IMG/VR virus record: IMGVR_UViG_3300017917_002434
Span: 205,731 to 269,730 of that record
DNA length: 64,000 nucleotides
Strand: one strand, 5' to 3'
Under the pieces are notes generated by a model. The model did not search any database, was not told the origin of the DNA, and was given only the letters and a program-made list of their open reading frames with translations. Made by a program: the position numbers and the translations under genes. Shown here piece by piece: positions 3,421-58,003 of the stretch (positions are counted from its first letter, which is position 1; each line of letters starts with the position of its first letter).

Positions 3421-6400
3421 ATGGCAAAGAGAAAAATAGACAATTATACATTTAGACCGGGTATCAGTTACCTGGGAAATCTGTATCCAGATGAATGGCA
3501 GAGCTTTTCTGATAACGTGCCGTTTATCAAAGCAGAACTAACAGCCTATTTAAACTATAGGATAGACATCGACACTGAGGTAAATCTGTATCCAAATGCT
3601 GTCCGTATTTTAGAAAACAATATTAATTTTATCAAAGAAGAAGCGACTGCTTGGATAGCTACACAGGTAGCAGGTAACTTTCCTGGATTTGTAGGTTATA
3701 CTTACGATTCAGCCAAATGTAAAAGAGACATTGGATTTGTTTTAACCGCTTATATCCATGATGTTAGATACGGAGGTAATGAAGACACTAGAACCATAGT
3801 CGGAAAATACTGGATCAACAATGAGCCACAGGTCGATGGGGATCGTCAGGCTGAGGTTAAAACTCACGAGTTTATCAGAGATCTTATAACAGATTACATT
3901 TTGCCTCTAGCTTCGTACACACCATTACAGCTTATCGCAACTAGATACACAACAGGACCAGCAGCCGAGGCCAACGCAGCAGCCCGTATAGATACCCTTT
4001 CAGCAATCACGACCACAGTAATCGCTAATGGCTTATCGTCGATGCCAGCGATATCTTATAAATCTGCTCCATACGAAAATTATACATTTAATTCTGAAAA
4101 ATGTCAGAGAGATCTTGGCTACGTACTAGATGCTTACTTACATGACTTGCGTTATGGCGGAAACGAACAGACTCGACTCACGATACAAAAATACTACGAC
4201 AACGGAGTACTACAAGTCGACGGCAGCGGCCAAGCTGAAGTTGAAGGTCATGAATTTGTAAGAGATCTTATTATTAATAATATCATGCAGAATGAAGCCG
4301 GTACGATATTGTATCCTGAAGCTGTGAGATTATTAACGCTGAACAAGGCCTATTTACAAAATGAAATCTTAGGATGGATCGCTAATGAAGTCACTGAAGC
4401 TACTAAATGCGAAAGAGATATTGGATATCTTATCGATGGAGCACAATATGACATAGTACTAGGCACAAATTACAATGCTTTATTTTTAGGCTTAGCAGAA
4501 TTCAACTCTTTAGATAATGATTTTTTCGTTATCGACACTATACAAAGAACTAAAACAGCCATAGCAGCTCTACCTAATGTTGCTGCGAGTACCGCAGCAG
4601 TGGCTAGAAATAATGCTTTCTTCAATGAAGTAGTTGACATAATCCAGAATGGTAGAGGAAGTGCTAATGAATTAGTGTTAGCCGAACCAAGTAATGCTAC
4701 AGTCAGTAGGATCGCAGCTAAAAATCAACTTGTAGCCAATAAAAATTTCTTAGCCGCAGAAGTTAATGCGTGGGTAGCAGAGCAATATCCTACAGCTGAT
4801 CATGATCCTGTAAAATGTTCTAGAGACGTTAAGTATGCTATCGATGCCTTATGCTACGATATCTTATATGGCGGAAACTCGGCTACTTACGATCAGGCTA
4901 GATTTTTCTTTTACGGTTTCTCTAGCGGAGCTCCAGGCATTGATCCTACTCATAGATTACAAACTGTAGCTGCCTATGTACATCTAAAACAAGTTATCGG
5001 TCAAGTGGTACAGAATCAAACGGTTACTAAGACCACAGGCAATACCTTAACACAGAATCAAACATTTCCAGCAGCCAGTTCGTCGGATGCTATTATCTGT
5101 CAAAATCTAGTACAGATCACAGCAGATGTTGTAGCAGCGACAACACAAACACAGGCAAATACGATTTTATCCGGTATTGTAAGATCAGTTCCTAGCATCA
5201 CATTCGCGACTTCTGCTTTACAGACAGCTTTTAATGCGATAACAACAGCTAAAACATCTGTGATAAATTCTGTTGTTGTTTTCAAAGGATATACCTATGA
5301 TTCTGCCAAGTGTATCAGAGATTCTGGCTTTGTCATAGATGCCCTAATCTATGACTTAGAAAATAACGGTAACGAAGAATCAAGACGAATAGCCCAGAAA
5401 TACTATATAGATGGAGTTTTTCAAGTTGACGGATCCCGTATTCCTGAAATAGCCAGCTATAGATTTTTACAAGAAACGATCAAGAATTATATTTTTCCAA
5501 GAGTAAATGCTCCTGATTATCAGATTGTATATCCTCAGATATTAACAGCACCATCTGCTGAAGTAGGTGCCTACGCAAGAATTACTGAACTAACAGATGT
5601 GTTTATTAATTTTCTAAAAGATGGTCCTAGTAGTTTACCAGCACTGTCTCAGAGAACTGTTCCTTATCAAACAGTAGAACAGCAGGTAGTTGACACTACC
5701 AAAGCCTACGATCCTGATGCTGGCACAGCTATTTTAGCACTTTCAAATGCTCTAGTTAACATCATAGAACAAGGTCTCGGAGCATTGCCTGTTAAAGAAA
5801 GTGCTGGATATGGTTTGATCAAATTTCAGGGTGTTGTAAGATTAGAAGACCTTTTACTAATCACAAATACTACAAAAAATGTAGTTATCTATAATTTCTC
5901 TAGCAATACTGCTGGCGGCGAAATTGTGCCAGAGTTTGACGGCGATGACGATTTCATAGCGTTCAAACAGGTTACAGATCGAGTTATTCATCTACGATTA
6001 AATGTTGATACATCGACTATGGATGAAACTGACGAGCTACAGATATTTGCTGAAGCCCCGGAAATGAAAGTTCGTCCGTACGATTTTGGTACAGATGCTA
6101 TCGAACGTCATAGAGTTGCTTCGCCTCAGTCAATGCTTGACGCTGACTTCGAATATGGTCTACAACCAACTAAGTGGCAGGCTATTGGTATCGCCAGAGG
6201 TTATCCATCAGTGTATGAAGTACCAGGATCAGATTTTGAAGTTGTGTCTATAACAACCGATGCGTCATTTCCTAACAACGGTGTAGGTGCTTCGACTATA
6301 ACTGTAACCACAGCAGCACCGCACGGATTATCAGCTGGTACACCGGTTACAGTGGCTGGTCTTGACACAGCGATCTCTGGTATCAGTAGAGCAGAGGGAG

Positions 6401-9400
6401 CGTTTGTCTTAGTAACTATCCCGACTCCTACTACATTTACATATTTTGCCAAGTCTAGAGTAGGTACTACCTCAGGAACCAGTTTAAAAACTACCTATAC
6501 TCAGATTAGAAAAGGCGGATTTTACACAGGGGCATCCATAGGTTTACCGACTATCAACTTGTTATCTAACGGGACATCGGGAACTTTTGTAACACAATTT
6601 GATACTCCGGCTGCGACATCTCGAATAGCTATCGCCAGCGGTAATATTCCAAGCGTAGGATCACCTATGAATGCCGCAGTAGGTATCGGGTTTGGTTCTC
6701 AGGTCACTGCCGTAGTCGGTGCTGGGGGTGTCGTAGTGACTCCCACTGTGTTAGGGGACTATGCTCCAACACTATTAGGTCTTACTACTCTTACCGTAGC
6801 TAGTACCAGCGGTATAGTGATTGGTTTAGGTGCCAATGATCAGACTGGATCGTCGACGTTCGTTGAATCTATAGTAGGAACTAATGTAACATTTACTAGA
6901 CCTTTTTCCGGTGCTGTGATAGGAAATACCACTACCTATACAGAATTAACCGGAACCAACGAAATATCTATCGGTTCAGCAGCAACATTCAATGTCGTTG
7001 GTAGCTCGGCAGGTTACATTTCTGTAGCCGTTAATTCAGGAGGCAGCGATTATCAAGTAGGAGATGTATTAAGAATAGTAGGAACTGATCTTACAGGAAC
7101 AACGCCAGCTAACGATCTATTGATCAAAGTAGCTACAGTATCCGGTGGTGCTATTTTAACTGCCGACGTTATTTCTGGAACTAGTGTAATGTCGTCACCT
7201 AACGAAACTATTAGCGGCATTAATAATAGTTCTTATACTGCTACTAGTCCAGACAGTACCATAGGTTCTGGAGCTACTTTTGACGTAACTAGAAACGGCA
7301 CAGCTTTTACATCAGTAATCAATGCCGGTGGTACTGGATACGTCAAGGGAACAGAGTTTCTAATCTTAGGAACTGTATTTACAAATAACACTACTCCGGC
7401 TAACGATGTAGAAATCACAGTTACCCAGACCACAGCAACATTTACTGGTCTATTACAAGATGCGACTACACTATCTGGTAGCTCGGCACAATTTAGTATA
7501 ACTAGGATCGGTGCTACCTATACCAGTTTGGTAGTTTCATTCGCTGGTAGCGGTTATGCCCTAGGAGAGATCGTTACGATCTACGGAACCCAACTAGGGG
7601 GCAACAATCCTTCAAACGATCTTCAGATCCAGGTTGACAACGTAGGCGGGGGCGGTGAAATTATCGCAGCGTCGCTGGTCAGCGGACTTGTAGCTAATGA
7701 AGATGCTCCTGGTGTAATTTCTCAGATATCTACCGCAGGTACAGGTGATAATAGAACAACTATTAATAATGTCCCAGTTCTAATAGTTCCAGGATCAGGA
7801 ATTAACTGTGAATTTTCTATAACTAGAACCGCCAGCGGTTATACAAACGTAGTAGTAACAGATGGAGGCACTGCCTACCTACCAGGAAATAGAATTAGGA
7901 TCCTAGGCAGCGACCTTGGGGGAGCAAACACAACTAATGATGCTATTGTTTCAGTGACTTCTGTTGACTCTATCACCGGAGCAATTACCGCAGCTACAGT
8001 AACTGGAACTGGTGTAGCAGGTATCAATTTACAGTTATATTCATCTGTGACTCTCAGCGAATTTACTACAGCTACTATAGCTTCGAGTACCAGCCTAGGC
8101 TTTGGTACCCTAGCGACTTTACAGATAATTTTTCAAGAGCCGCATGGTATACCACCCGGGGGATCATTTATCGTTACTGTGAGTTCAGACAACGGATCTA
8201 ACAATCATGCGTTAGCCAATGGATCTTTCTCTGCTACTCAGATACCTACAAGAAACACTATTACTTTCCAGGCTAGATCTCCGGGCGTTATCACAGGAGC
8301 ACCTATTACCGGAGTCGTATACCCAAGACCGGACAGTTTCTTCACACATAGACCGTTTGACGGCGGTGTACAACTAGGTACTGGCGGTCCACAACACGGT
8401 GTACAGGCTATACGACAGAGTAAAAAATATATTCGTTATCAATCTGGTAAAGGTGTAATGTATACAACGGGTGCTCTGTTTGCTCCAAGTTATGATGTAT
8501 TGTCTATATTGGCAACAGATGTCGAAGTTGGAGCTACCATAGAAATCACCTTAGGTGATAATGATCACGGGTTACAGCGTGGTGCTGTGATTAGACTCAG
8601 CGGAGTCTTAACTGGAGGTTACGATGGCGATTATGAAGTAGATGAAATCGTCAGCGAACGTACATTTAGAATAATCGCTACGAAGCGTGTAGGTTCTAGA
8701 AAACCGTCATTGAGCTTCAGCTGTCAAATTTCTACACTACGTTGGAAGGGTGCGGTAGTACGTGCCGGAGTGTTTGATGATCAAAATGGAATATTCTGGG
8801 AATATGACGGACAGACATTATGGGCCGTTCAGCGTACTTCTACTAAACAATTAGCAGGTACGATCTCAGTTAACGCTGGCTCAAACAGGATCACAGGACT
8901 GAACAGTAGATTTAGAGATCAATTAAAAGCCGGTGACGCTGTTACTATCAGAGGTATGACACACATCGTAACTCACGTCGACAGCCAAACTTCGATGACT
9001 GTTAACCCAGATTATCGCGGCGTCAGCAATGTGTCAAACGCTAAGATGAGTTTAATTTCAGAAGTACGTGTACAACAACGAGATTTCAACAAAGATAGAT
9101 TAGACGGAACAGGTCCTAGCGGATACGATCTAGATATTACCAAGATGCAGATGATCGGAATCCAATATTCATGGTACGGTGCTGGTTTTATTGACTTCAT
9201 GTTGCGAGGATCTGATGGAAATTATGTGTTCGCCCATAGAATGAGAAATTCGAATATCAATACCGAAGCTTATATGAGAACAGGTAACTTGCCTGTGAGA
9301 TATGAAGTTTCAAACTACGGTGCGACCAGCAGATTAGTTGGAGACATTGGAAACACATCTACAGAGTTAACTCTCGAAAGCATAGCAGGATTCCCTACTA

Positions 9401-11502
9401 CGGGAATCGTTTATATCGATAACGAAATGATTTCGTACACTGGAGTTAATACCAGCCAGAACAAACTCACAGGGTGTACTAGATCAGCACAGTTAGATCT
9501 ATTCATTGCTGGTGCTAATAGAAATTTTACCGCAGGGGTAGCTGCTAATCACAGCAACGGTACAGGTGTAATTTTAATGAATAACACTACAACACCTTTG
9601 ATTAGCCACTGGGGTAGTGCGTTCTTGACCGACGGATTGTTTGATTTTGACCGTGGATACATTTTCAACTATGCTTCTACCGGTCTAAGTGTAAGCACTG
9701 TTAAATCAACGGCTTTCCTAATTCGTCTAGCACCTAGTGTGTCAAACGCAGTTGTTGGAGATCTAGGCGATAGAGAGCTCCTAAATAGAGCACAATTACT
9801 ATTGAAAGAAATCGCAGTAACGTCAGACACAGGCTCGGGCGGTATTATTGTTGAGGGAGTATTAAATCCTCAGAATTATCCTTCTAATCCTAGCGACATT
9901 GTTTGGTCAGGTTTGTCCGGTGTTGCGGCCGGTGGTCAGCCTAGCTTCGCTCAGATAGCACCAGGAGGATCTGTAAACTGGTCAGGCGGCGTAGCCCAAC
10001 CAACAGCTACAGCCACAGCATTAAACACAGTTACCGCCAATATCACTGTACCAAATAAAACAGCATTCAATAGACCTGCTGGTACATCATTCGTCTATGT
10101 TACACAGACTAGCTGGAATACATCAGGATCCCAGAGTGGTTTCGCTATAGCAGCTTCAGATACTAAATTCCAGTCTGGTACAACAATTTCATCCGTAGCT
10201 TCGAGTCCTAGTCCAGTAGCCACGACATTAGGAATATTAACTTCTAGTATGTCTACATTCTTTAGAAGTATATCGGGTAATAGTATCAGCGGTAACGGTA
10301 TTACTGCCACATTGAACTTTAACAACCAAGGATACGTACCGTTTCCAGTAAATTCGAGAATAACTGTTAGTGGTTTCAGTGCTTATAATGGAACTTATAT
10401 CGTAACTGGAGCAGGAAATAACTTTGTACAGTTTGCCTCTACGTCGACTAACTTCCAAACAAACGGAACAGTCCAGACTGCTTACGTCGCTGGGCAGACA
10501 ACATTGAACATAACAGAAGCTAGTTGGAATAACATGACTAGCCCTGTAACACAGACAGGATTTGGCGTAACATCTTCATTTCCGGCAGGAACAACTGTCA
10601 CTGGAGTTACATCGATACAAGGAACATCGCCGAACAGATACTATACCGTGACATTCAGTCAGGGTCTTACTTCTGATTTACCGTTATCATCTACGACTAT
10701 CAATACCAGTTTTGGTGGAGCAAGAACAAGCACAAATAACCTATTCTTTACCGCAGCTAGTTGGACAGCATTACCAGTAGATGTTCCGGTTAACGGCACA
10801 CTGACTAATGATCCTACCAAATTTACTGGCGGAACTATTATCAACTCTATCAGCGGCCTACAGACATTTGGCGGTACTGGATACTATTCTGTATCATTTA
10901 GTAACAACTGTATAGGAACATTAGCAGGCGGAACAACTGTCACATTTGATACTATACCTTATTTTACTCTGTTCTTGAGTAGAACTTCGGCACAGGCTGT
11001 TAATGCTAATGCCACTATAACTATGTCATTGGCACAAAACTCTGCTGTCACCAACTTTGTGTATTTTACACAGGCCAGTTGGGAAACTCTAGTTTCGACC
11101 TATTCAGCAGGTGCCGGTACAGAAGTAGCAGATACAAAATTTGCTGCGGGTACTCGTGTTGCTACTGTGAGTACTCTAAGAACGTTTGGTGGTTCTGGAT
11201 ATTATGTAGTAACATTTACCCAGACGTCTAATGCTGTTGTGGCTGGCGGAAACACTATTACATTTAGATTTGGACAACCTCCATATGCGTTACCGGGCGA
11301 ACAGGTATTCTCATTCATCAGTTTACCAGGAAGTTCGGACAGTCTTAACCTAGAGGACCTCAAAGAATTAACCAATACTACCTTGGGTGGTAGAGGTACA
11401 TTCCCTAACGGTCCTGACGTTTTGGCTATCAACATCTTCAAAGTATCTGGAGCAGCAGTTAACGCTAACGTAATTCTACGTTGGTCCGAAGCACAAGCCT
11501 AA
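3421..11502 (+). CDS. Giant (2693 aa) modular virion structural / tail-fibre protein
   Basis: Single long ORF, Thr/Gly/Ser-rich, with three internal repeat families (KCxRDxG.., GxxYxxG..xNDxxIxV, xTxASW..KFxxGT). Confidence 0.75.
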   Translation: MAKRKIDNYTFRPGISYLGNLYPDEWQSFSDNVPFIKAELTAYLNYRIDIDTEVNLYPNAVRILENNINFIKEEATAWIATQVAGNFPGFVGYTYDSAKCKRDIGFVLTAYIHDVRYGGNEDTRTIVGKYWINNEPQVDGDRQAEVKTHEFIRDLITDYILPLASYTPLQLIATRYTTGPAAEANAAARIDTLSAITTTVIANGLSSMPAISYKSAPYENYTFNSEKCQRDLGYVLDAYLHDLRYGGNEQTRLTIQKYYDNGVLQVDGSGQAEVEGHEFVRDLIINNIMQNEAGTILYPEAVRLLTLNKAYLQNEILGWIANEVTEATKCERDIGYLIDGAQYDIVLGTNYNALFLGLAEFNSLDNDFFVIDTIQRTKTAIAALPNVAASTAAVARNNAFFNEVVDIIQNGRGSANELVLAEPSNATVSRIAAKNQLVANKNFLAAEVNAWVAEQYPTADHDPVKCSRDVKYAIDALCYDILYGGNSATYDQARFFFYGFSSGAPGIDPTHRLQTVAAYVHLKQVIGQVVQNQTVTKTTGNTLTQNQTFPAASSSDAIICQNLVQITADVVAATTQTQANTILSGIVRSVPSITFATSALQTAFNAITTAKTSVINSVVVFKGYTYDSAKCIRDSGFVIDALIYDLENNGNEESRRIAQKYYIDGVFQVDGSRIPEIASYRFLQETIKNYIFPRVNAPDYQIVYPQILTAPSAEVGAYARITELTDVFINFLKDGPSSLPALSQRTVPYQTVEQQVVDTTKAYDPDAGTAILALSNALVNIIEQGLGALPVKESAGYGLIKFQGVVRLEDLLLITNTTKNVVIYNFSSNTAGGEIVPEFDGDDDFIAFKQVTDRVIHLRLNVDTSTMDETDELQIFAEAPEMKVRPYDFGTDAIERHRVASPQSMLDADFEYGLQPTKWQAIGIARGYPSVYEVPGSDFEVVSITTDASFPNNGVGASTITVTTAAPHGLSAGTPVTVAGLDTAISGISRAEGAFVLVTIPTPTTFTYFAKSRVGTTSGTSLKTTYTQIRKGGFYTGASIGLPTINLLSNGTSGTFVTQFDTPAATSRIAIASGNIPSVGSPMNAAVGIGFGSQVTAVVGAGGVVVTPTVLGDYAPTLLGLTTLTVASTSGIVIGLGANDQTGSSTFVESIVGTNVTFTRPFSGAVIGNTTTYTELTGTNEISIGSAATFNVVGSSAGYISVAVNSGGSDYQVGDVLRIVGTDLTGTTPANDLLIKVATVSGGAILTADVISGTSVMSSPNETISGINNSSYTATSPDSTIGSGATFDVTRNGTAFTSVINAGGTGYVKGTEFLILGTVFTNNTTPANDVEITVTQTTATFTGLLQDATTLSGSSAQFSITRIGATYTSLVVSFAGSGYALGEIVTIYGTQLGGNNPSNDLQIQVDNVGGGGEIIAASLVSGLVANEDAPGVISQISTAGTGDNRTTINNVPVLIVPGSGINCEFSITRTASGYTNVVVTDGGTAYLPGNRIRILGSDLGGANTTNDAIVSVTSVDSITGAITAATVTGTGVAGINLQLYSSVTLSEFTTATIASSTSLGFGTLATLQIIFQEPHGIPPGGSFIVTVSSDNGSNNHALANGSFSATQIPTRNTITFQARSPGVITGAPITGVVYPRPDSFFTHRPFDGGVQLGTGGPQHGVQAIRQSKKYIRYQSGKGVMYTTGALFAPSYDVLSILATDVEVGATIEITLGDNDHGLQRGAVIRLSGVLTGGYDGDYEVDEIVSERTFRIIATKRVGSRKPSLSFSCQISTLRWKGAVVRAGVFDDQNGIFWEYDGQTLWAVQRTSTKQLAGTISVNAGSNRITGLNSRFRDQLKAGDAVTIRGMTHIVTHVDSQTSMTVNPDYRGVSNVSNAKMSLISEVRVQQRDFNKDRLDGTGPSGYDLDITKMQMIGIQYSWYGAGFIDFMLRGSDGNYVFAHRMRNSNINTEAYMRTGNLPVRYEVSNYGATSRLVGDIGNTSTELTLESIAGFPTTGIVYIDNEMISYTGVNTSQNKLTGCTRSAQLDLFIAGANRNFTAGVAANHSNGTGVILMNNTTTPLISHWGSAFLTDGLFDFDRGYIFNYASTGLSVSTVKSTAFLIRLAPSVSNAVVGDLGDRELLNRAQLLLKEIAVTSDTGSGGIIVEGVLNPQNYPSNPSDIVWSGLSGVAAGGQPSFAQIAPGGSVNWSGGVAQPTATATALNTVTANITVPNKTAFNRPAGTSFVYVTQTSWNTSGSQSGFAIAASDTKFQSGTTISSVASSPSPVATTLGILTSSMSTFFRSISGNSISGNGITATLNFNNQGYVPFPVNSRITVSGFSAYNGTYIVTGAGNNFVQFASTSTNFQTNGTVQTAYVAGQTTLNITEASWNNMTSPVTQTGFGVTSSFPAGTTVTGVTSIQGTSPNRYYTVTFSQGLTSDLPLSSTTINTSFGGARTSTNNLFFTAASWTALPVDVPVNGTLTNDPTKFTGGTIINSISGLQTFGGTGYYSVSFSNNCIGTLAGGTTVTFDTIPYFTLFLSRTSAQAVNANATITMSLAQNSAVTNFVYFTQASWETLVSTYSAGAGTEVADTKFAAGTRVATVSTLRTFGGSGYYVVTFTQTSNAVVAGGNTITFRFGQPPYALPGEQVFSFISLPGSSDSLNLEDLKELTNTTLGGRGTFPNGPDVLAINIFKVSGAAVNANVILRWSEAQA

Positions 11503-18456: not shown

Positions 18457-18798
18457 ATGCGAGCTAGCGAATTTATATTTGAGAGTGACGAAGAATTCTA
18501 TACCGAAACTGCTAAAATGGTTTGGGGAGTAGGAAAGAAAACTGCTCGGGGCGGTAAAGCTAAATTAAAATTTCGCTGCTCAACAGGTCCGAGAAAAAGT
18601 CGGCAAGTAAGTCATCCTAGTAAATGCGGTCAGCCTATGGATGTAGCAAAAGCTCAAAAAATGAAAACCACCCGTGCCCGTACAAAAACACAGGCGGCTC
18701 GTAGAACAGACCGTACCAAGTCGATCAATACTGCTAGTGTATTAGCTAATAAGCTAAACAATCCCGGTAAGCCAAAAACACCAAAACCTTATTATTAA
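18457..18798 (+). CDS. Small basic protein with capsid-targeting-like N-terminus
   Basis: Starts MRASEFIFE; K/R-rich. Confidence 0.6.
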   Translation: MRASEFIFESDEEFYTETAKMVWGVGKKTARGGKAKLKFRCSTGPRKSRQVSHPSKCGQPMDVAKAQKMKTTRARTKTQAARRTDRTKSINTASVLANKLNNPGKPKTPKPYY

Positions 18799-24034: not shown

Positions 24035-25159
24035 ATGTCAGACAAATTCACTAGATTTTTAAAGGGAGTAGGTCAAGGTATTACCAATCCTAAAGGTAAC
24101 CTAGGCGATGCTCGTCACGCGGCTCGATTGTATATAGACAATCAGTATACAAGAGCACCGAGAACAAAATTTTTATATCATGTACAATTTAATATAAATC
24201 GTCCAGCAGTTCTCTCTGCGAATTTTTTAAAGCTTCATCAAAAAACGATTGATATGATGGTTAAACAGGCAGACTTGCCTAAGATAACATTAGAACACGA
24301 AATAAAAAATCAATATAATAGAAAAAAAGTTATCTACAAAGATATAAAATATGAAGGTCTTAATATTGTATTTCACGATGACAACCTCGGTGTGATTAAC
24401 GCTCTCTGGGCACAATACCTATCGTGGTATTCCAATGAAAGATTATTGCCTCCCACATTCTGGACTCAGACAAATGGCCCCTACTCTCCCTTAGATGGGA
24501 CTCAATCCGGAGACGAAAGAATTGCGATAACCGGAGCAGCGGCCGGAGCAGATGATCCTCAATCCGGAACTGTTCGATACGGACTAGATGTGCCAAAAAA
24601 GGCGTTCGTAAGACCGTTTTTTGATTCGATAACCATCTATACATTGAGCAGGAAAAAATTTAATTCTTATACATTGATTAATCCGCATATAACTAGTTGG
24701 AATCATGGAAACGTAGATCAAGCTTCTAATAACGGAACCATCGAAGCAACTATGAACATAGTCTATGAAACTGTGCTATACGGCACCGGCAGCATCGTTA
24801 AAGGAACCTCGGCTACAGCGGCATTACCGAGACAGTTTACTGATCTGTATTACGATAAAACACCTAGCCCATTGACTATACAGGGCGGACAGCTCACTAG
24901 TCTTTTTGGCCCGGGCGGTTTGCTTAACGCAGGATCGAGTATCATCGAGGATGCTCCATTAATATACGGAGTAGGTAATGTTCAAGGGGATATTACAGGC
25001 TCGTCTGGTCTTGAACAGGCCATTAAAGCAATTAATCTTTACAAGAGTTTAGCATCATTACGGCCCGAAAATCTCATAGCTGAAGCCACTAATATTATTT
25101 TAACTCCGGGTGCTGTCGGTAATGCTGTAAGCGGAATCCCCGGAGTCCGCTTCAAATAA
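24035..25159 (+). CDS. Tail-tube-fold baseplate/tube initiator (gp48/gp54-like)
   Basis: DLPK..QYNRKK..Y..I.FHDD..INPHITSW tube-like motifs; late promoter; synteny. Confidence 0.65.
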   Translation: MSDKFTRFLKGVGQGITNPKGNLGDARHAARLYIDNQYTRAPRTKFLYHVQFNINRPAVLSANFLKLHQKTIDMMVKQADLPKITLEHEIKNQYNRKKVIYKDIKYEGLNIVFHDDNLGVINALWAQYLSWYSNERLLPPTFWTQTNGPYSPLDGTQSGDERIAITGAAAGADDPQSGTVRYGLDVPKKAFVRPFFDSITIYTLSRKKFNSYTLINPHITSWNHGNVDQASNNGTIEATMNIVYETVLYGTGSIVKGTSATAALPRQFTDLYYDKTPSPLTIQGGQLTSLFGPGGLLNAGSSIIEDAPLIYGVGNVQGDITGSSGLEQAIKAINLYKSLASLRPENLIAEATNIILTPGAVGNAVSGIPGVRFK

Positions 25160-26490: not shown

Positions 26491-27054
26491 ATGAAAACAC
26501 TAAAAGATTACCTAGCTGAGAGTAAAAAAACCTACGGATTTCGCATCAAAGTAGCAGGTCCCTTGCCAGAAGGCTTTGAAGATAGAGCCAAAGCAAAAAT
26601 GGGCAAATACGGCTGCGGCAAATTTGAAAAGGTTGCTACTACTCCTATCCAAAAAACTGCTCTAGAGTTCCTAGACCTATCAAACATTGAAGTTACTGTT
26701 TTTGAGTGTGAGTGTTCATACCCAGTAACACCACAGCAGGTACAGGTAGATATCCATGAGTCTACTGGTATTTCTAATACTCATCTAAGAGTTAGAAATG
26801 TTAATGATCCATTTGAACAAGCAGAACCCCTAGGCGATCCTAGTGGAAAAGCATTGTTAAATGACAGCGAATTAAAAGATGCTGAAAAAATCAAACACAA
26901 AGAAAATTTTGGAAATGAATTTACAGCATCGTTCTTGAAAGATATTGCTAAAGTCAGCAAAGAAAGAACAAAAGAATCAAATCAGGGCGAATATAAGATG
27001 CCCAAAACACCTAAACAAGATAAAGCAGGCATGAAAAGTGCCTTGGGGAGTTAA
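26491..27054 (+). CDS. Putative head internal protein
   Basis: Starts MKTLKDYLAE (capsid-targeting-like); TAAATA late box 5 nt upstream. Confidence 0.55.
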   Translation: MKTLKDYLAESKKTYGFRIKVAGPLPEGFEDRAKAKMGKYGCGKFEKVATTPIQKTALEFLDLSNIEVTVFECECSYPVTPQQVQVDIHESTGISNTHLRVRNVNDPFEQAEPLGDPSGKALLNDSELKDAEKIKHKENFGNEFTASFLKDIAKVSKERTKESNQGEYKMPKTPKQDKAGMKSALGS

Positions 27055-54829: not shown

Positions 54830-56250
54830 CTAAGAATTACGATTACGACGTACAGAAATTATATCTAGAAATGATGTTGGCAGATGCTGAAACATTCGTT
54901 CGCTGCCAAGGTATTTTCGACAGTACTCTGTTTGATAGAAAACTACAAGAAGCCGCAGAATTCGTACACAAATACGCAGAGCAGTATACAGTATTGCCAG
55001 AGTTTGAGATGGTCAATGCCAGTTGTGGCACAGATCTAAAAGACCCCGGAGAGCTCAAAGATGGACACTTAGATTGGCTCATGGATGAATTTGAACAGTT
55101 TACTCGTCATAAGAGTCTAGAACGTGCTATCATTGAATCGGCTGATCTATTAGAAAAACATGACTATGGTCAGGTAGAAGCTAAGATCAAAGAAGCTGTA
55201 CAGATTGGTCTGGCTCGAGACATGGGCACAGATTATTTCGCTGATCCTAGAGCACGTCTGATGGGACTCAAAGACAAGAATGGGCAGGTCAGTACAGGTT
55301 GGTCCAGCATGGATCGTAAACTGTTTGGCGGCATGAATCGTGGAGAACTGAATATCTTCGCAGGCGGATCTGGTGCTGGTAAAAGTCTGTTCTTAGCCAA
55401 CCTTGGAGTGAACTGGGCGTTGAATGGTATGAACGTGATATACCTAACACTGGAACTTTCAGAAGCATTGGTCAGTATGCGTATCGATTCTATGCTCACA
55501 GGTGTGCCCACTAAAGAGATCTTTAGAAACATCGATGACATCGAGATGAAGGTCAAACTCGTGGGCAAGAAAGCAGGACTATTCCAAGTCAAATACATGC
55601 CATCAGGTAAGACTGTCAACGACATACGTGCTTATATCAAAGAATATGAGATCAAAGTTGGACGTCGTGTAGATGTGTTGTTAGTGGATTATATGGATCT
55701 ATTGATGCCTATCTCTAAGAAGATTTCGCCAGCGGACCTGTTTATCAAAGACAAATTCGTATCAGAAGAACTGCGTAATCTAGCCATGGAGAAACAGTGT
55801 GTGTTCGTTACAGCGGCACAGTTGAATCGTGGGGCTGTTGAAGAAGTAGAATTTGATCACAGCCACATTTCAGGTGGTTTGTCAAAGATCCAGACAGCAG
55901 ACAACGTGTTTGGTATCTTTACCAGCCGTGCTATGCGTGAGCGTGGTCGCTATCAATTACAGCTGATGAAGACTCGTAGTTCAAGCGGTGTAGGACAAAA
56001 GATAGATCTAGAGTACAATATCGAGACACTGAGAATCACTGATCTACCAGAGGATCAGCAGGAACAGGAAAGCCAGATGCGTAGCAGCCAGATCATCAAT
56101 CAGATCAAATCACGCACCAGCACAGTGGTAGACGAAGATGGCGTCATAGATCCCAATCGCGGCAGCAGTCTAACACCCGCACCCAAGGCCATAGTAGAAA
56201 GCACCAAACTCAAACAGTTTATCAATAACCTAACACAAGATGAAGAGTAA
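54826..56250 (+). CDS. gp41: Replicative DnaB-like helicase (T4 gp41-like)
   Basis: Walker A GGSGAGKS, TLELSE, VDYMDL, AAQLNR and QLMKTR motifs. Confidence 0.93.
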   Translation: MTKNYDYDVQKLYLEMMLADAETFVRCQGIFDSTLFDRKLQEAAEFVHKYAEQYTVLPEFEMVNASCGTDLKDPGELKDGHLDWLMDEFEQFTRHKSLERAIIESADLLEKHDYGQVEAKIKEAVQIGLARDMGTDYFADPRARLMGLKDKNGQVSTGWSSMDRKLFGGMNRGELNIFAGGSGAGKSLFLANLGVNWALNGMNVIYLTLELSEALVSMRIDSMLTGVPTKEIFRNIDDIEMKVKLVGKKAGLFQVKYMPSGKTVNDIRAYIKEYEIKVGRRVDVLLVDYMDLLMPISKKISPADLFIKDKFVSEELRNLAMEKQCVFVTAAQLNRGAVEEVEFDHSHISGGLSKIQTADNVFGIFTSRAMRERGRYQLQLMKTRSSSGVGQKIDLEYNIETLRITDLPEDQQEQESQMRSSQIINQIKSRTSTVVDEDGVIDPNRGSSLTPAPKAIVESTKLKQFINNLTQDEE

Positions 56251-56476
56251 AGCAGTAGAGCTATTGAAGTGGTTACCTCAAGAAGAAGAAAACATCGAAA
56301 TTGACTGGCCCAAAGTACACAAGACCATAGGTTTGGATCAGACCCAGTGGTTGCTCAAACAGTCACGATACGACTGCCAGATCATACTGGAACGCAGAGA
56401 CGTTTACTGTCGTTTGATCGCTGAATTTTACAACGAACATACATTATTAAATTATCAGCTAAAGTGGGCTAAATAA
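56240..56476 (+). CDS. Hypothetical protein
   Basis: 78-aa ORF overlapping the helicase stop. Confidence 0.6.
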   Translation: MKSKAVELLKWLPQEEENIEIDWPKVHKTIGLDQTQWLLKQSRYDCQIILERRDVYCRLIAEFYNEHTLLNYQLKWAK

Positions 56477-56479
56477 TGG

Positions 56480-56824
56480 ATGCGTGCAAAAGAATTTATC
56501 ACTGAACGTACTTTCCCCCAGCGTAAAAGCTCGGTGATGAGTACCACATTCCATTTTCCTACCATGCCCTCTGCTAACCCCTATGCTGCCTATAGATTTG
56601 GCATGGCCATGGCAGATCACACTCTGACCTACCCGGAAGGCCCTGTGAGCAATCATGCTGTGATAGTAGCATATACTCCTGAAGAGGAAGAGATCATCAA
56701 AGGTGCTACTCGCCAGACTGGGCACAAGGGCAAATTAGCCGCAGATCGTGGCAGTCATGAGCCCCAGGATACCTATACGCAGAGCCCTGTAGCCCAAAGA
56801 AAAAAGAACAAGTACGGAGTCTAG
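56480..56824 (+). CDS. Small protein with capsid-targeting-like N-terminus
   Basis: Starts MRAKEFITE; TAAATA 4 nt upstream. Confidence 0.7.
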   Translation: MRAKEFITERTFPQRKSSVMSTTFHFPTMPSANPYAAYRFGMAMADHTLTYPEGPVSNHAVIVAYTPEEEEIIKGATRQTGHKGKLAADRGSHEPQDTYTQSPVAQRKKNKYGV

Positions 56825-57523
56825 ATGCTGCTGAGAGAACTGTTAGAGCGTGTGTCAGTTACTGTTAATCGAGAGTTAAATCCTCGACTGTGGCGTGACG
56901 GTGAGTTAGATCCCGAAGTAAAACAGCATCTACTAAAGATCGCTGATCATTTTGAGCGTTTCGTGGGCATAGATCTGCCTGTCAAAGACATCACTGTGAC
57001 AGGATCTAACGCTAACTATACCTGGACCAGCCATTCCGATCTAGACCTACATCTCATAGTTCCCGGCACTCCCACAGACGAAGATCGCGAGCTGTATTCT
57101 GCTAAAAAGAGCCTATGGTCAGAACAGCACAACATCATGATACGGGGACATGAAGTAGAGTGCTATGTCCAGGGCGAAGACGAACCGCATCACTCTACGG
57201 GTGTCTACAGTCTCACCACAGACACATGGGTGATCCAACCCGAAAAAGTAGAACCCACCATAGACGACAATGCCGTAGATGCCAAGTATCAGGATCTTAC
57301 CAGATTGATACAGCTGGCTCTAGACAACTCCAGATTAGATCAGCTGAATCGTGTCAAAGATCGTGTGACCAAGATGCGTAAAGCGGGCCTAGAACGTGCG
57401 GGCGAATGGTCAACAGAAAATCTCGTATTCAAAGAACTACGCAGATCGGGGTTGATAGATCAACTTGCTGAGCGTATCCGTGAACTGGAAGATTCAGAAC
57501 TGAGTCTAGAAAATCGCAAATAA
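56825..57523 (+). CDS. Pol-beta-superfamily nucleotidyltransferase
   Basis: TGSNANY..SDLDLH (GS..DxD) plus a downstream VECYVQ third carboxylate; helical C-terminal domain. Confidence 0.85.
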   Translation: MLLRELLERVSVTVNRELNPRLWRDGELDPEVKQHLLKIADHFERFVGIDLPVKDITVTGSNANYTWTSHSDLDLHLIVPGTPTDEDRELYSAKKSLWSEQHNIMIRGHEVECYVQGEDEPHHSTGVYSLTTDTWVIQPEKVEPTIDDNAVDAKYQDLTRLIQLALDNSRLDQLNRVKDRVTKMRKAGLERAGEWSTENLVFKELRRSGLIDQLAERIRELEDSELSLENRK

Positions 57524-57568
57524 TAGTAGCAGATTATAAATACCTGTATATAACAGGGGAACAGCAAC

Positions 57569-58003
57569 ATGCTACACATCATCAGAGACCTAGGGGACGA
57601 TCTCACAAGATTGATCAAGGACGACCCTGTGAGACCTGAAATTCCCCTAGAACAGAGAATCAACAGCAATTCAGAGATATTCGTGCTGAAATCAGAAGAC
57701 GACACACCCTTGGCCGTGACCTGTGTGAAATTCCTGGAATCAGTGCCCACAGAAGTAGAAGATCTTACCAATACCGCAGTAAACACTACCACAGCAGTGT
57801 TCTACACCATATGGTCATATGCCGCAGGTGCGGGCCGCAGACTCATAGAAGAAGCACAGGCCGAGATCAAGAAAACACATCCAGAAGTCAAAACCTATGT
57901 GACACTGAGTCCAAAGACCGAAATGGCCGAACGCTTCCACCTTAAAAACGGTGCGGAAAAATGGCGAGTCAACGAACGATCAGTGAACTATCTGTATAGA
58001 TGA
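57569..58003 (+). CDS. GNAT-fold acetyltransferase-like protein
   Basis: YTIWSYAAGAGRRLI (acetyl-CoA loop) and ERFHLKNG (FYxxxG-like). Confidence 0.65.
   Translation: MLHIIRDLGDDLTRLIKDDPVRPEIPLEQRINSNSEIFVLKSEDDTPLAVTCVKFLESVPTEVEDLTNTAVNTTTAVFYTIWSYAAGAGRRLIEEAQAEIKKTHPEVKTYVTLSPKTEMAERFHLKNGAEKWRVNERSVNYLYR

Follow-up and report, generated by a model that had tools for sequence, protein, structure and literature searches.

Do two abutting genes near the end of a freshwater phage genome encode proteins that are carried in the phage head and delivered into the host alongside the DNA, and if so, do the two proteins act as a pair? The genes lie in IMG/VR record IMGVR_UViG_3300017917_002434, within a stretch of 64,000 nucleotides (positions 205,731 to 269,730; here called the window) that is the final 64 kb of a 269,730-bp viral record with a G+C content of 38.8%. 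The first gene (gene 1) encodes a small basic protein that begins MRAKEFITE; the second (gene 2) encodes a Pol-beta nucleotidyltransferase (NTase) that begins MLLRELLE. An initial annotation of the window had described a late TAAATA box ahead of both genes, N-termini resembling capsid-targeting leaders and a complete NTase active site, and had proposed that the NTase is packaged and injected with the small protein as its chaperone or inhibitor. The gene layout, the box, the N-termini and the NTase motifs are all present, position for position (Table 1). The best explanation, to which we give about an even chance, is that the two genes form a late-transcribed unit of a T4-related jumbo phage and encode two independent head-cargo proteins. 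Coordinates prefixed G000 refer to the whole 269,730-bp record, and all others to the 64-kb window.

The leader of gene 1 recalls a well-studied signal. In T4, the capsid-targeting sequence MKTYQEFIAE is common to the internal proteins, brings any fused protein into the head and is removed by the prohead protease with a single cut (PMC8442874); T-even internal proteins are recognised via this signal, and the three of T4 each inhibit a specific GmrSD restriction enzyme (PMC12373910). A search of IMG/VR with a back-translated MRAKEFI pattern returned at least 120 loci, with nearly all of the 129 matches at true starts of open reading frames. Position 9 was not in the pattern, and it is a glutamate in 110 of the 120 loci among the matches listed. 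Once their first ten residues are removed, the 111 unique leader proteins separate into at least 26 unrelated BLAST clusters with protein lengths from 65 to 583 aa, the largest of which has 75 members and includes the gene 1 protein. Further, two to three leader genes stand in tandem at loci L036, L046, L047, L058, L069, L076 and L077, and two other proteins of the genome studied here have the leader, written in different codons and without similarity to gene 1 past residue 9. Residues 7 to 9 of the gene 1 leader (I-T-E) fit the (L/I)xE site of T4-type prohead proteases. Judged by its sequence, gene 1 has a modular N-terminal leader of the T4 capsid-targeting type, and this leader is a new variant of the T4 one. 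The resemblance first described is thus far above chance, as the same leader is found on unrelated proteins.

The T4 internal proteins IPI to IPIII are the closest known comparison. In both systems, a short N-terminal leader is attached to otherwise unrelated small basic proteins, its core EFIxE ends at (L/I)xE, a gp21-type protease is encoded, the loci are variable and contain tandem arrays, and late-promoter expression is expected. The marks of a T4-type internal protein are accordingly visible here, namely a leader shared by unrelated proteins and an (L/I)xE end in a genome that encodes a gp21-type protease. Unlike in T4, the leader reads MRAKEFIxE, it occurs in uncultured freshwater jumbo phages on proteins of up to 583 aa, and the mature parts have no detectable homology to the T4 internal proteins. 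A literature search found no paper with the leader string, and querying isolated phages with two proteins of the small family returned no homologue; as these searches gave no match, the family occurs in no cultured phage, as far as the collection shows.

The leader could instead serve another purpose, either as an element that promotes translation initiation or stability in leaderless mRNAs or as a signal for a different compartment, but this is quite improbable. In its favour, the link between the leader and phage heads, packaging and cleavage included, is here read from genes alone, unlike in T4; and 15 of the 118 leader genes (gene 1 and 14 others in IMG/VR) have TAAATA 4–6 nt ahead of the start, implying leaderless mRNAs. 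However, the close box is confined to those 15, while 42 genes have a Shine-Dalgarno-like sequence instead, and the synonymous codons vary freely; for example, the third codon of the leader is GCA in 73 cases, GCT in 21, GCC in 20 and GCG in 4. Because the synonymous codons vary and so few genes have the close box, the conserved object is the peptide; an RNA-level element was rejected as the cause of the leader on account of the codon variation. As a peptide, the leader has a conserved E9 that makes a protease site and a core EFIxE identical to that of the T4 capsid-targeting sequence, and it lacks the hydrophobic character of a signal peptide.

Beyond its leader, the gene 1 protein belongs to a widespread and divergent small family. 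There were 450 homologues among the candidates scored, and all 120 of those listed are 114 aa long; relatives at 26–43% identity occur in dozens of viral loci. The ends of the family alignment are conserved and the middle is variable. The AF2 model of the protein (pLDDT 81) is mostly extended, with two helices. A Foldseek search of the PDB with this model found no structural relative, and no HEPN or other match was found in Pfam. NCBIfam gave no match to either protein of the unit, and a PDB sequence search returned nothing. Two details of the family's C-terminal region may be added. It ends in a conserved ..SPVA.PK.N.YG[VI] (window 56792-56824), whose codons contain the GGAG used by the downstream gene, and a conserved S-x-E lies about 20 residues before the C-terminus.

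The box ahead of gene 1 behaves like a late-promoter motif in this genome, which bears out the initial description. The genome as a whole is poor in TAAATA (91 and 53 copies on the two strands versus about 240 expected on each), and yet it is found in 26 of 78 upstream intergenic regions versus 1.3 expected and is the top enriched hexamer there. The genes behind it encode the tail sheath, the tail tube, a tube-like protein, virion proteins and the large terminase; the 'late' assignment follows from this gene set and from the gp55-like sigma factor encoded in the genome. The strict T4 consensus TATAAATA was tried as a working promoter motif and dropped, having only 11 copies in the genome; the motif used was [AG]ATAAATA / CTAAATA.

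The spacing between box and start is bimodal, with peaks at 5 nt and 21 nt. In the class near 21 nt, a Shine-Dalgarno sequence lies between the box and the start. The close class, with TAAATA 4–6 nt ahead of the start, comprises 14 of the 300 called genes versus 11 of 8383 (0.13%) non-start ATGs, and the box of gene 1 is a member of it. In T4, the late-promoter box lies at -13 to -6. Provided that T4 geometry applies, a leaderless or nearly leaderless mRNA is predicted for gene 1, whose box is only 4 nt from the ATG, and the close-spacing genes as a whole suggest a class of leaderless late mRNAs. The 14 genes of this class genome-wide are without a Shine-Dalgarno sequence; examples in the window start at 24035, 26491, 27656 (the large terminase), 29256, 37907 and 56480. 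Metatranscriptome data contain a few short fragments over gene 1 (56577-56780) and the downstream gene, too sparse for locating a transcript 5′ end.

The promoter junction is more stable than what follows it. The 78-aa upstream gene and the junction GGGCTAAATAATGGATG are kept in the relatives L004, L007, L010, L097, L115 and L134, and in L087 and L122 the junction differs by a single base. At L010, where the NTase is 66% identical and gene 1 is missing, GGGCTAAATAATGGATG runs directly into the NTase gene. Since the L010 junction continues straight to the NTase, the box plausibly drives whatever genes occupy the slot.

The phage itself is, by its gene content, a T4-related jumbo myovirus with a host in freshwater. 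This assignment follows from its tail, head, replication, protease and gp55-like genes: a contractile tail sheath, a tail tube, a large terminase, a portal and a T4-type major head protein are encoded, together with a gp32-like single-stranded DNA-binding protein and a UvsX recombinase. The DnaB-type helicase is nearest to a protein of Pseudomonas phage PA5oct (54% identity). The record was found in sequencing runs from pond, river, aquaculture and other freshwater metagenomes, and a DNA search of the isolated-phage collection gave no match.

Gene 2 encodes an NTase whose active site is predicted to be catalytically intact. The motifs are G60-S61 (57002-57007), D72-x-D74 (57038-57046) and E112 (57158-57160), and these residues (GS, D72, D74 and E112) do not vary in alignments of 7, 26 and 30 relatives, the most distant of which share about 31% identity; the complete GS, DxD and distal E arrangement reported initially is thereby confirmed. 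The protein scores 22.8 bits against Pfam NTP_transf_2 (cut-off 21), and matches phrog_36119 in PHROG at 3e-48. Its AF2 model (pLDDT 91) combines a Pol-beta core with a four-helix domain at the C-terminus, so that the protein shows all the features of a Pol-beta NTase: the hG[GS] and [DE]x[DE] motifs, the third carboxylate, the profile score and the alpha/beta fold. The core, with GS, DxD and third carboxylate, is shared with AAD(9), AadA, ANT(4'), MNT antitoxins and CD-NTases, and the two-domain organisation with the aminoglycoside enzymes and CD-NTases, to which the Foldseek alignments span about 220–290 columns. Foldseek ranked Pol-beta relatives first, namely aminoglycoside adenylyltransferases and CdnE cyclases, with a TM of only about 0.27; a wide fold search with VIA-align gave mostly uninformative helical-bundle matches to the C-terminal domain; and the relatives in AlphaFold DB are all unnamed. 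The RlaP and CCA-adding families gave no match to the NTase in Pfam at E ≤ 1 or in NCBIfam at E ≤ 0.1. Because the Foldseek matches have low TM, the relatives are unnamed and no RNA-repair family matches, the substrate is not readable from the fold. The family is one previously uncharacterised. The activity we favour, as an inference only, is that the NTase nucleotidylylates a host protein as infection begins, in analogy to MNT-type enzymes and to the protein-modifying domains found in polyvalent proteins. For the tRNA repair and cyclic-nucleotide synthesis raised initially, the analysis gave no positive evidence.

Three lines of evidence bear on whether this NTase is packaged. First, ORF156 of S-CREM2, a 175-kb cyanophage, is a homologue of the NTase (35.6% identity), annotated there as hypothetical and belonging to phrog_36119. 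CsCl-purified virions of S-CREM2 yielded 52 detected proteins, among which ORF156 was represented by 6 unique peptides, ORF155 directly upstream by 5, and the cytidylyltransferase ORF154, which adjoins ORF155, by 3 (PMC10665884). As in the window, a small charged protein is encoded upstream of the S-CREM2 NTase, and both products were in the purified virions; unlike in the window, the upstream protein comes from an unrelated family.

Second, the family is found mainly in very large proteins. An exhaustive profile-free search returned 3838 cluster representatives at E ≤ 0.001, which makes the family an abundant one. Among the best 150 of these 3838, 103 are at least 500 aa long, the largest having 2288 aa, and in most relatives of that size the NTase lies at the extreme N-terminus. 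In 32 aligned giants of 1000–2288 aa (e.g. P0268, P0262 and P0254), a conserved HExxH motif comes after the NTase, and further domains found in the set are Amidoligase_2 (20 of 32), GH19, SLT, LysM, NUDIX, GNAT and ART-PolyVal. Fusions of the NTase with a cytidylyltransferase-like domain exist as well, mirroring the neighbouring genes ORF154–156. Multidomain proteins of 500–2288 aa with an N-terminal NTase have the architecture of polyvalent proteins, for which packaging and injection have been predicted (Iyer et al. 2017, PMC5512222). The window NTase, being a single 232-aa domain, is therefore a solo version of a polyvalent domain rather than a polyvalent protein, while its relatives are of that type. 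The NTase described in the 2017 survey is minimal, belongs to conjugative elements of Firmicutes and was reported absent from phage-type polyvalent proteins (PMC5512222); because it differs, the present family is an addition to the polyvalent repertoire, and giants with an N-terminal NTase and HExxH are a type not described in that survey. The family ranges over cyanophages, flavobacterial phages, Caulobacter phages, and very large uncultured and Prevotella-labelled phages, possibly Lak-type megaphages.

Third, the family shares an N-terminal peptide. The pattern M-x-[IL]-x-E-L is present at the N-terminus of 85 of 120 close and 88 of 150 distant NTase relatives, and residues 1–8 of the window NTase are disordered in the AF2 model (pLDDT < 50). 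The ADP-ribosyltransferase Alt of T4 is packaged, injected and modifies the host. Its N-terminus, MELITELFDE, resembles that of the NTase; both are enzymes with an N-terminal [LI]-x-E-L peptide that transfer a nucleotide-derived group, and the NTase would likewise act at the moment of infection. They differ in fold and chemistry (Pol-beta NTase versus ADP-ribosyltransferase), and injection of the NTase is a proposal. Moreover, the protein of this genome that is homologous to the virion cytidylyltransferase has the start MRINELFED, and S-CREM2 ORF154 itself has a start, MKNFSSFLTE, that resembles the T4 leader. As a third line the peptide is suggestive only. The description of the NTase N-terminus as capsid-targeting-like accordingly holds in part, as its resemblance within this genome is modest although the NTase family as a whole conserves it. 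The S-CREM2 detections and the polyvalent architecture are indirect evidence that the NTase family travels in virions, and packaging of both proteins is plausible; the packaging proposal is partly supported, more strongly for the small protein than for the NTase.

Alternatively, the NTase may be an ordinary cytoplasmic enzyme of late or middle infection that stays unpackaged, leaving the small protein, if either, as head cargo; we regard this as unlikely, though far from negligible. Possible roles would be modification of nucleic-acid ends, tRNA repair, or the making or consuming of a nucleotide signal. Pol-beta NTases discussed for jumbo phages are mostly RNA-repair enzymes (PMC7824862), the gene lies near replication genes such as the helicase gene, and CD-NTases and RNA-tailing enzymes are among the top Foldseek matches. 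Several further points weigh against a late-transcribed pair of packaged proteins. The peptide counts of the S-CREM2 detections are low, and the authors of that study caution that abundant non-structural proteins may co-purify (PMC10665884); the S-CREM2 homologue shares only about 36% identity and has an upstream neighbour of a different family; and packaging in the present clade is predicted from genes. The NTase N-terminus has its E at position 8 and not 9, M-x-[IL]-x-E-L is present in only 4 of 17 solo representatives (< 300 aa), and its 7 occurrences among 300 genes of the genome compare with about 2 expected, a rough estimate from amino-acid frequencies. One of the genome's three leader proteins, MRAKEFIVKK, is without the E. 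In addition, a metatranscriptome fragment of one relative begins upstream of the box, so that read-through transcription is possible.

Against a purely cytoplasmic NTase stand the lack of any RlaP or CCA-adding match and of an RNA ligase, none being found among the neighbouring genes at this locus or at the relatives' loci examined. Such a role would also leave the conserved, disordered N-terminal peptide unexplained. In most cases the family forms the N-terminal part of polyvalent proteins that also contain lytic, metallopeptidase-motif and ADP-ribosyltransferase domains, and the products of the three adjacent S-CREM2 genes were all detected in virions.

Whether the two proteins of the unit work together is a separate matter. 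The 114-aa protein could be a dedicated chaperone, inhibitor or antitoxin that is packaged with the NTase, as first proposed, but we consider this highly unlikely. The stop codon of gene 1 (TAG, 56822-56824) abuts the NTase ATG at 56825, so translational coupling is probable; the pair is kept in clade relatives whose NTases are 59–90% identical; and a small charged protein also precedes the NTase in S-CREM2 and S-CRM01. However, among the matches listed the NTase is present at only 6 of 120 leader-family loci, and L010 has the NTase without the small gene, behind the same promoter junction. At L115 and L122, the slot is filled by small-family members of only 34–37% identity, and the genes that precede the NTase in cyanophages, Maribacter phages and Caulobacter phage Cr30 bear no relation to gene 1. 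The small protein is not HEPN-like, and neither the obligate co-occurrence nor the recognisable partner family of a toxin-antitoxin or enzyme-inhibitor pair is seen. A complex prediction for the NTase and the 114-aa protein scored 0.00 with the partner fold uncertain, which is neutral on binding. The proposed chaperone or inhibitor role is therefore not supported, as the NTase accompanies few leader loci and occurs without the small protein, and the slot, from these comparisons, behaves like a hypervariable cassette site rather than a two-component system.

For this phage we infer transcription timing, packaging, cleavage, injection and NTase substrate, and the following course of events would account for the unit. 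The leader would dock the gene 1 protein to the scaffolding core, by analogy with T4, and the gp21-type prohead protease would cut it after (L/I)xE; the protein would remain in the head and enter the host along with the DNA, where it would most likely bind or inhibit a host defence. Members of its family would be swapped in the hypervariable slot. The NTase would be packaged via its own short conserved N-terminal peptide. Once injected, it would modify a host target by transfer of a nucleoside monophosphate; a protein is the likeliest acceptor, ahead of a small molecule or the end of a nucleic acid.

Proteins that phages inject are the first means of attack on host immunity, and outside the T-even phages they are difficult to spot. 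We tentatively propose, at somewhat less than an even chance, that MRAKEFIxE works as a transferable head-targeting signal across a large, uncultured group of related T4-like phages from freshwater, with M-x-[IL]-x-E-L maybe a second such signal. If this is true, the leaders give the whole injected proteome of such phages straight from sequence, and that proteome includes hypervariable anti-defence candidates of about 125 aa and a new NTase family heading giant polyvalent proteins. A sequence-readable leader on dozens of unrelated proteins would make metagenomes a catalogue of candidate injected effectors, and the NTase substrate, once found, would establish a new way of taking over the host or countering its defences.

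Table 1. Positions of the two-gene unit, its signals, its neighbours and related genes of the same genome.
Feature	Coordinates	Strand	Remarks
Upstream 78-aa gene	56240..56476	+	Open reading frame 3′ of the DnaB-type helicase gene; ends W-A-K-stop, containing TAAATA
TAAATA box	56470..56475	+	Late-promoter-like; overlaps TAA stop 56474-56476; 4 nt before ATG 56480
Gene 1 leader MRAKEFITE	56480..56506	+	Putative capsid-targeting/cleavage signal, terminal I-T-E
Gene 1, 114-aa basic protein, pI 9.4	56480..56824	+	Candidate internal-protein-like cargo
GGAG Shine-Dalgarno for NTase	56816..56819	+	In final codons of gene 1, 5 nt before NTase ATG
NTase N-terminal octapeptide MLLRELLE	56825..56848	+	Possible second type of targeting/cleavage leader
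Gene 2, Pol-beta NTase, 232 aa	56825..57523	+	Core and C-terminal helical bundle
Perfect TATAAATA box	57535..57542	+	26 nt ahead of next gene
144-aa protein like malonyl-CoA decarboxylase C-terminal domain	57569..58003	+	Pfam PF05292, 2.8e-9; own late box
MRASEFIFE protein, 113 aa, pI 10.6	18457..18798	+	Second leader gene in window
MRAKEFIVKK protein, 492 aa	G000:83700-85178		Third leader gene of genome
Prohead protease, T4 gp21-type	G000:168650-169084		Peptidase_S77, 81.6 bits
gp55-like late sigma factor	G000:153265-153549		E 4.5e-11 versus S-CREM2 protein

The 144-aa gene downstream of the NTase is syntenic in the relatives L004-L006. The malonyl-CoA decarboxylase C-terminal domain that its product resembles has what we take to be an acetyltransferase (GNAT)-like fold, and GNAT domains are present in the giant relatives of the NTase too. 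One metatranscriptome fragment matches 57562-57704, in the region of this gene, exactly.

Elsewhere in the genome, three consecutive genes at G000:82680-85178 (L013) start MRLFELFG, MRINELFED and MRAKEFIVKK, and the MRINELFED protein is cytidylyltransferase-like and 32% identical to the S-CREM2 virion protein ORF154; from these starts, the genes are a possible cluster of head-packaged proteins. Cytidylyltransferase-like matches (HIGH superfamily) number four in the genome, at G000 71231, 83065, 217286 (window 11556) and 243652 (window 37922). Three of them exceed the Pfam cut-off, and the number is unusual for one phage. The structural region also contains a 2693-aa open reading frame (window 3421-11502). 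Further, a 187-aa protein (window 26491-27054) with a match to a virion structural PHROG has an N-terminus, MKTLKDYLAE, that is close to the T4 sequence MKTYQEFIAE, and its gene has TAAATA 5 nt ahead of the ATG.

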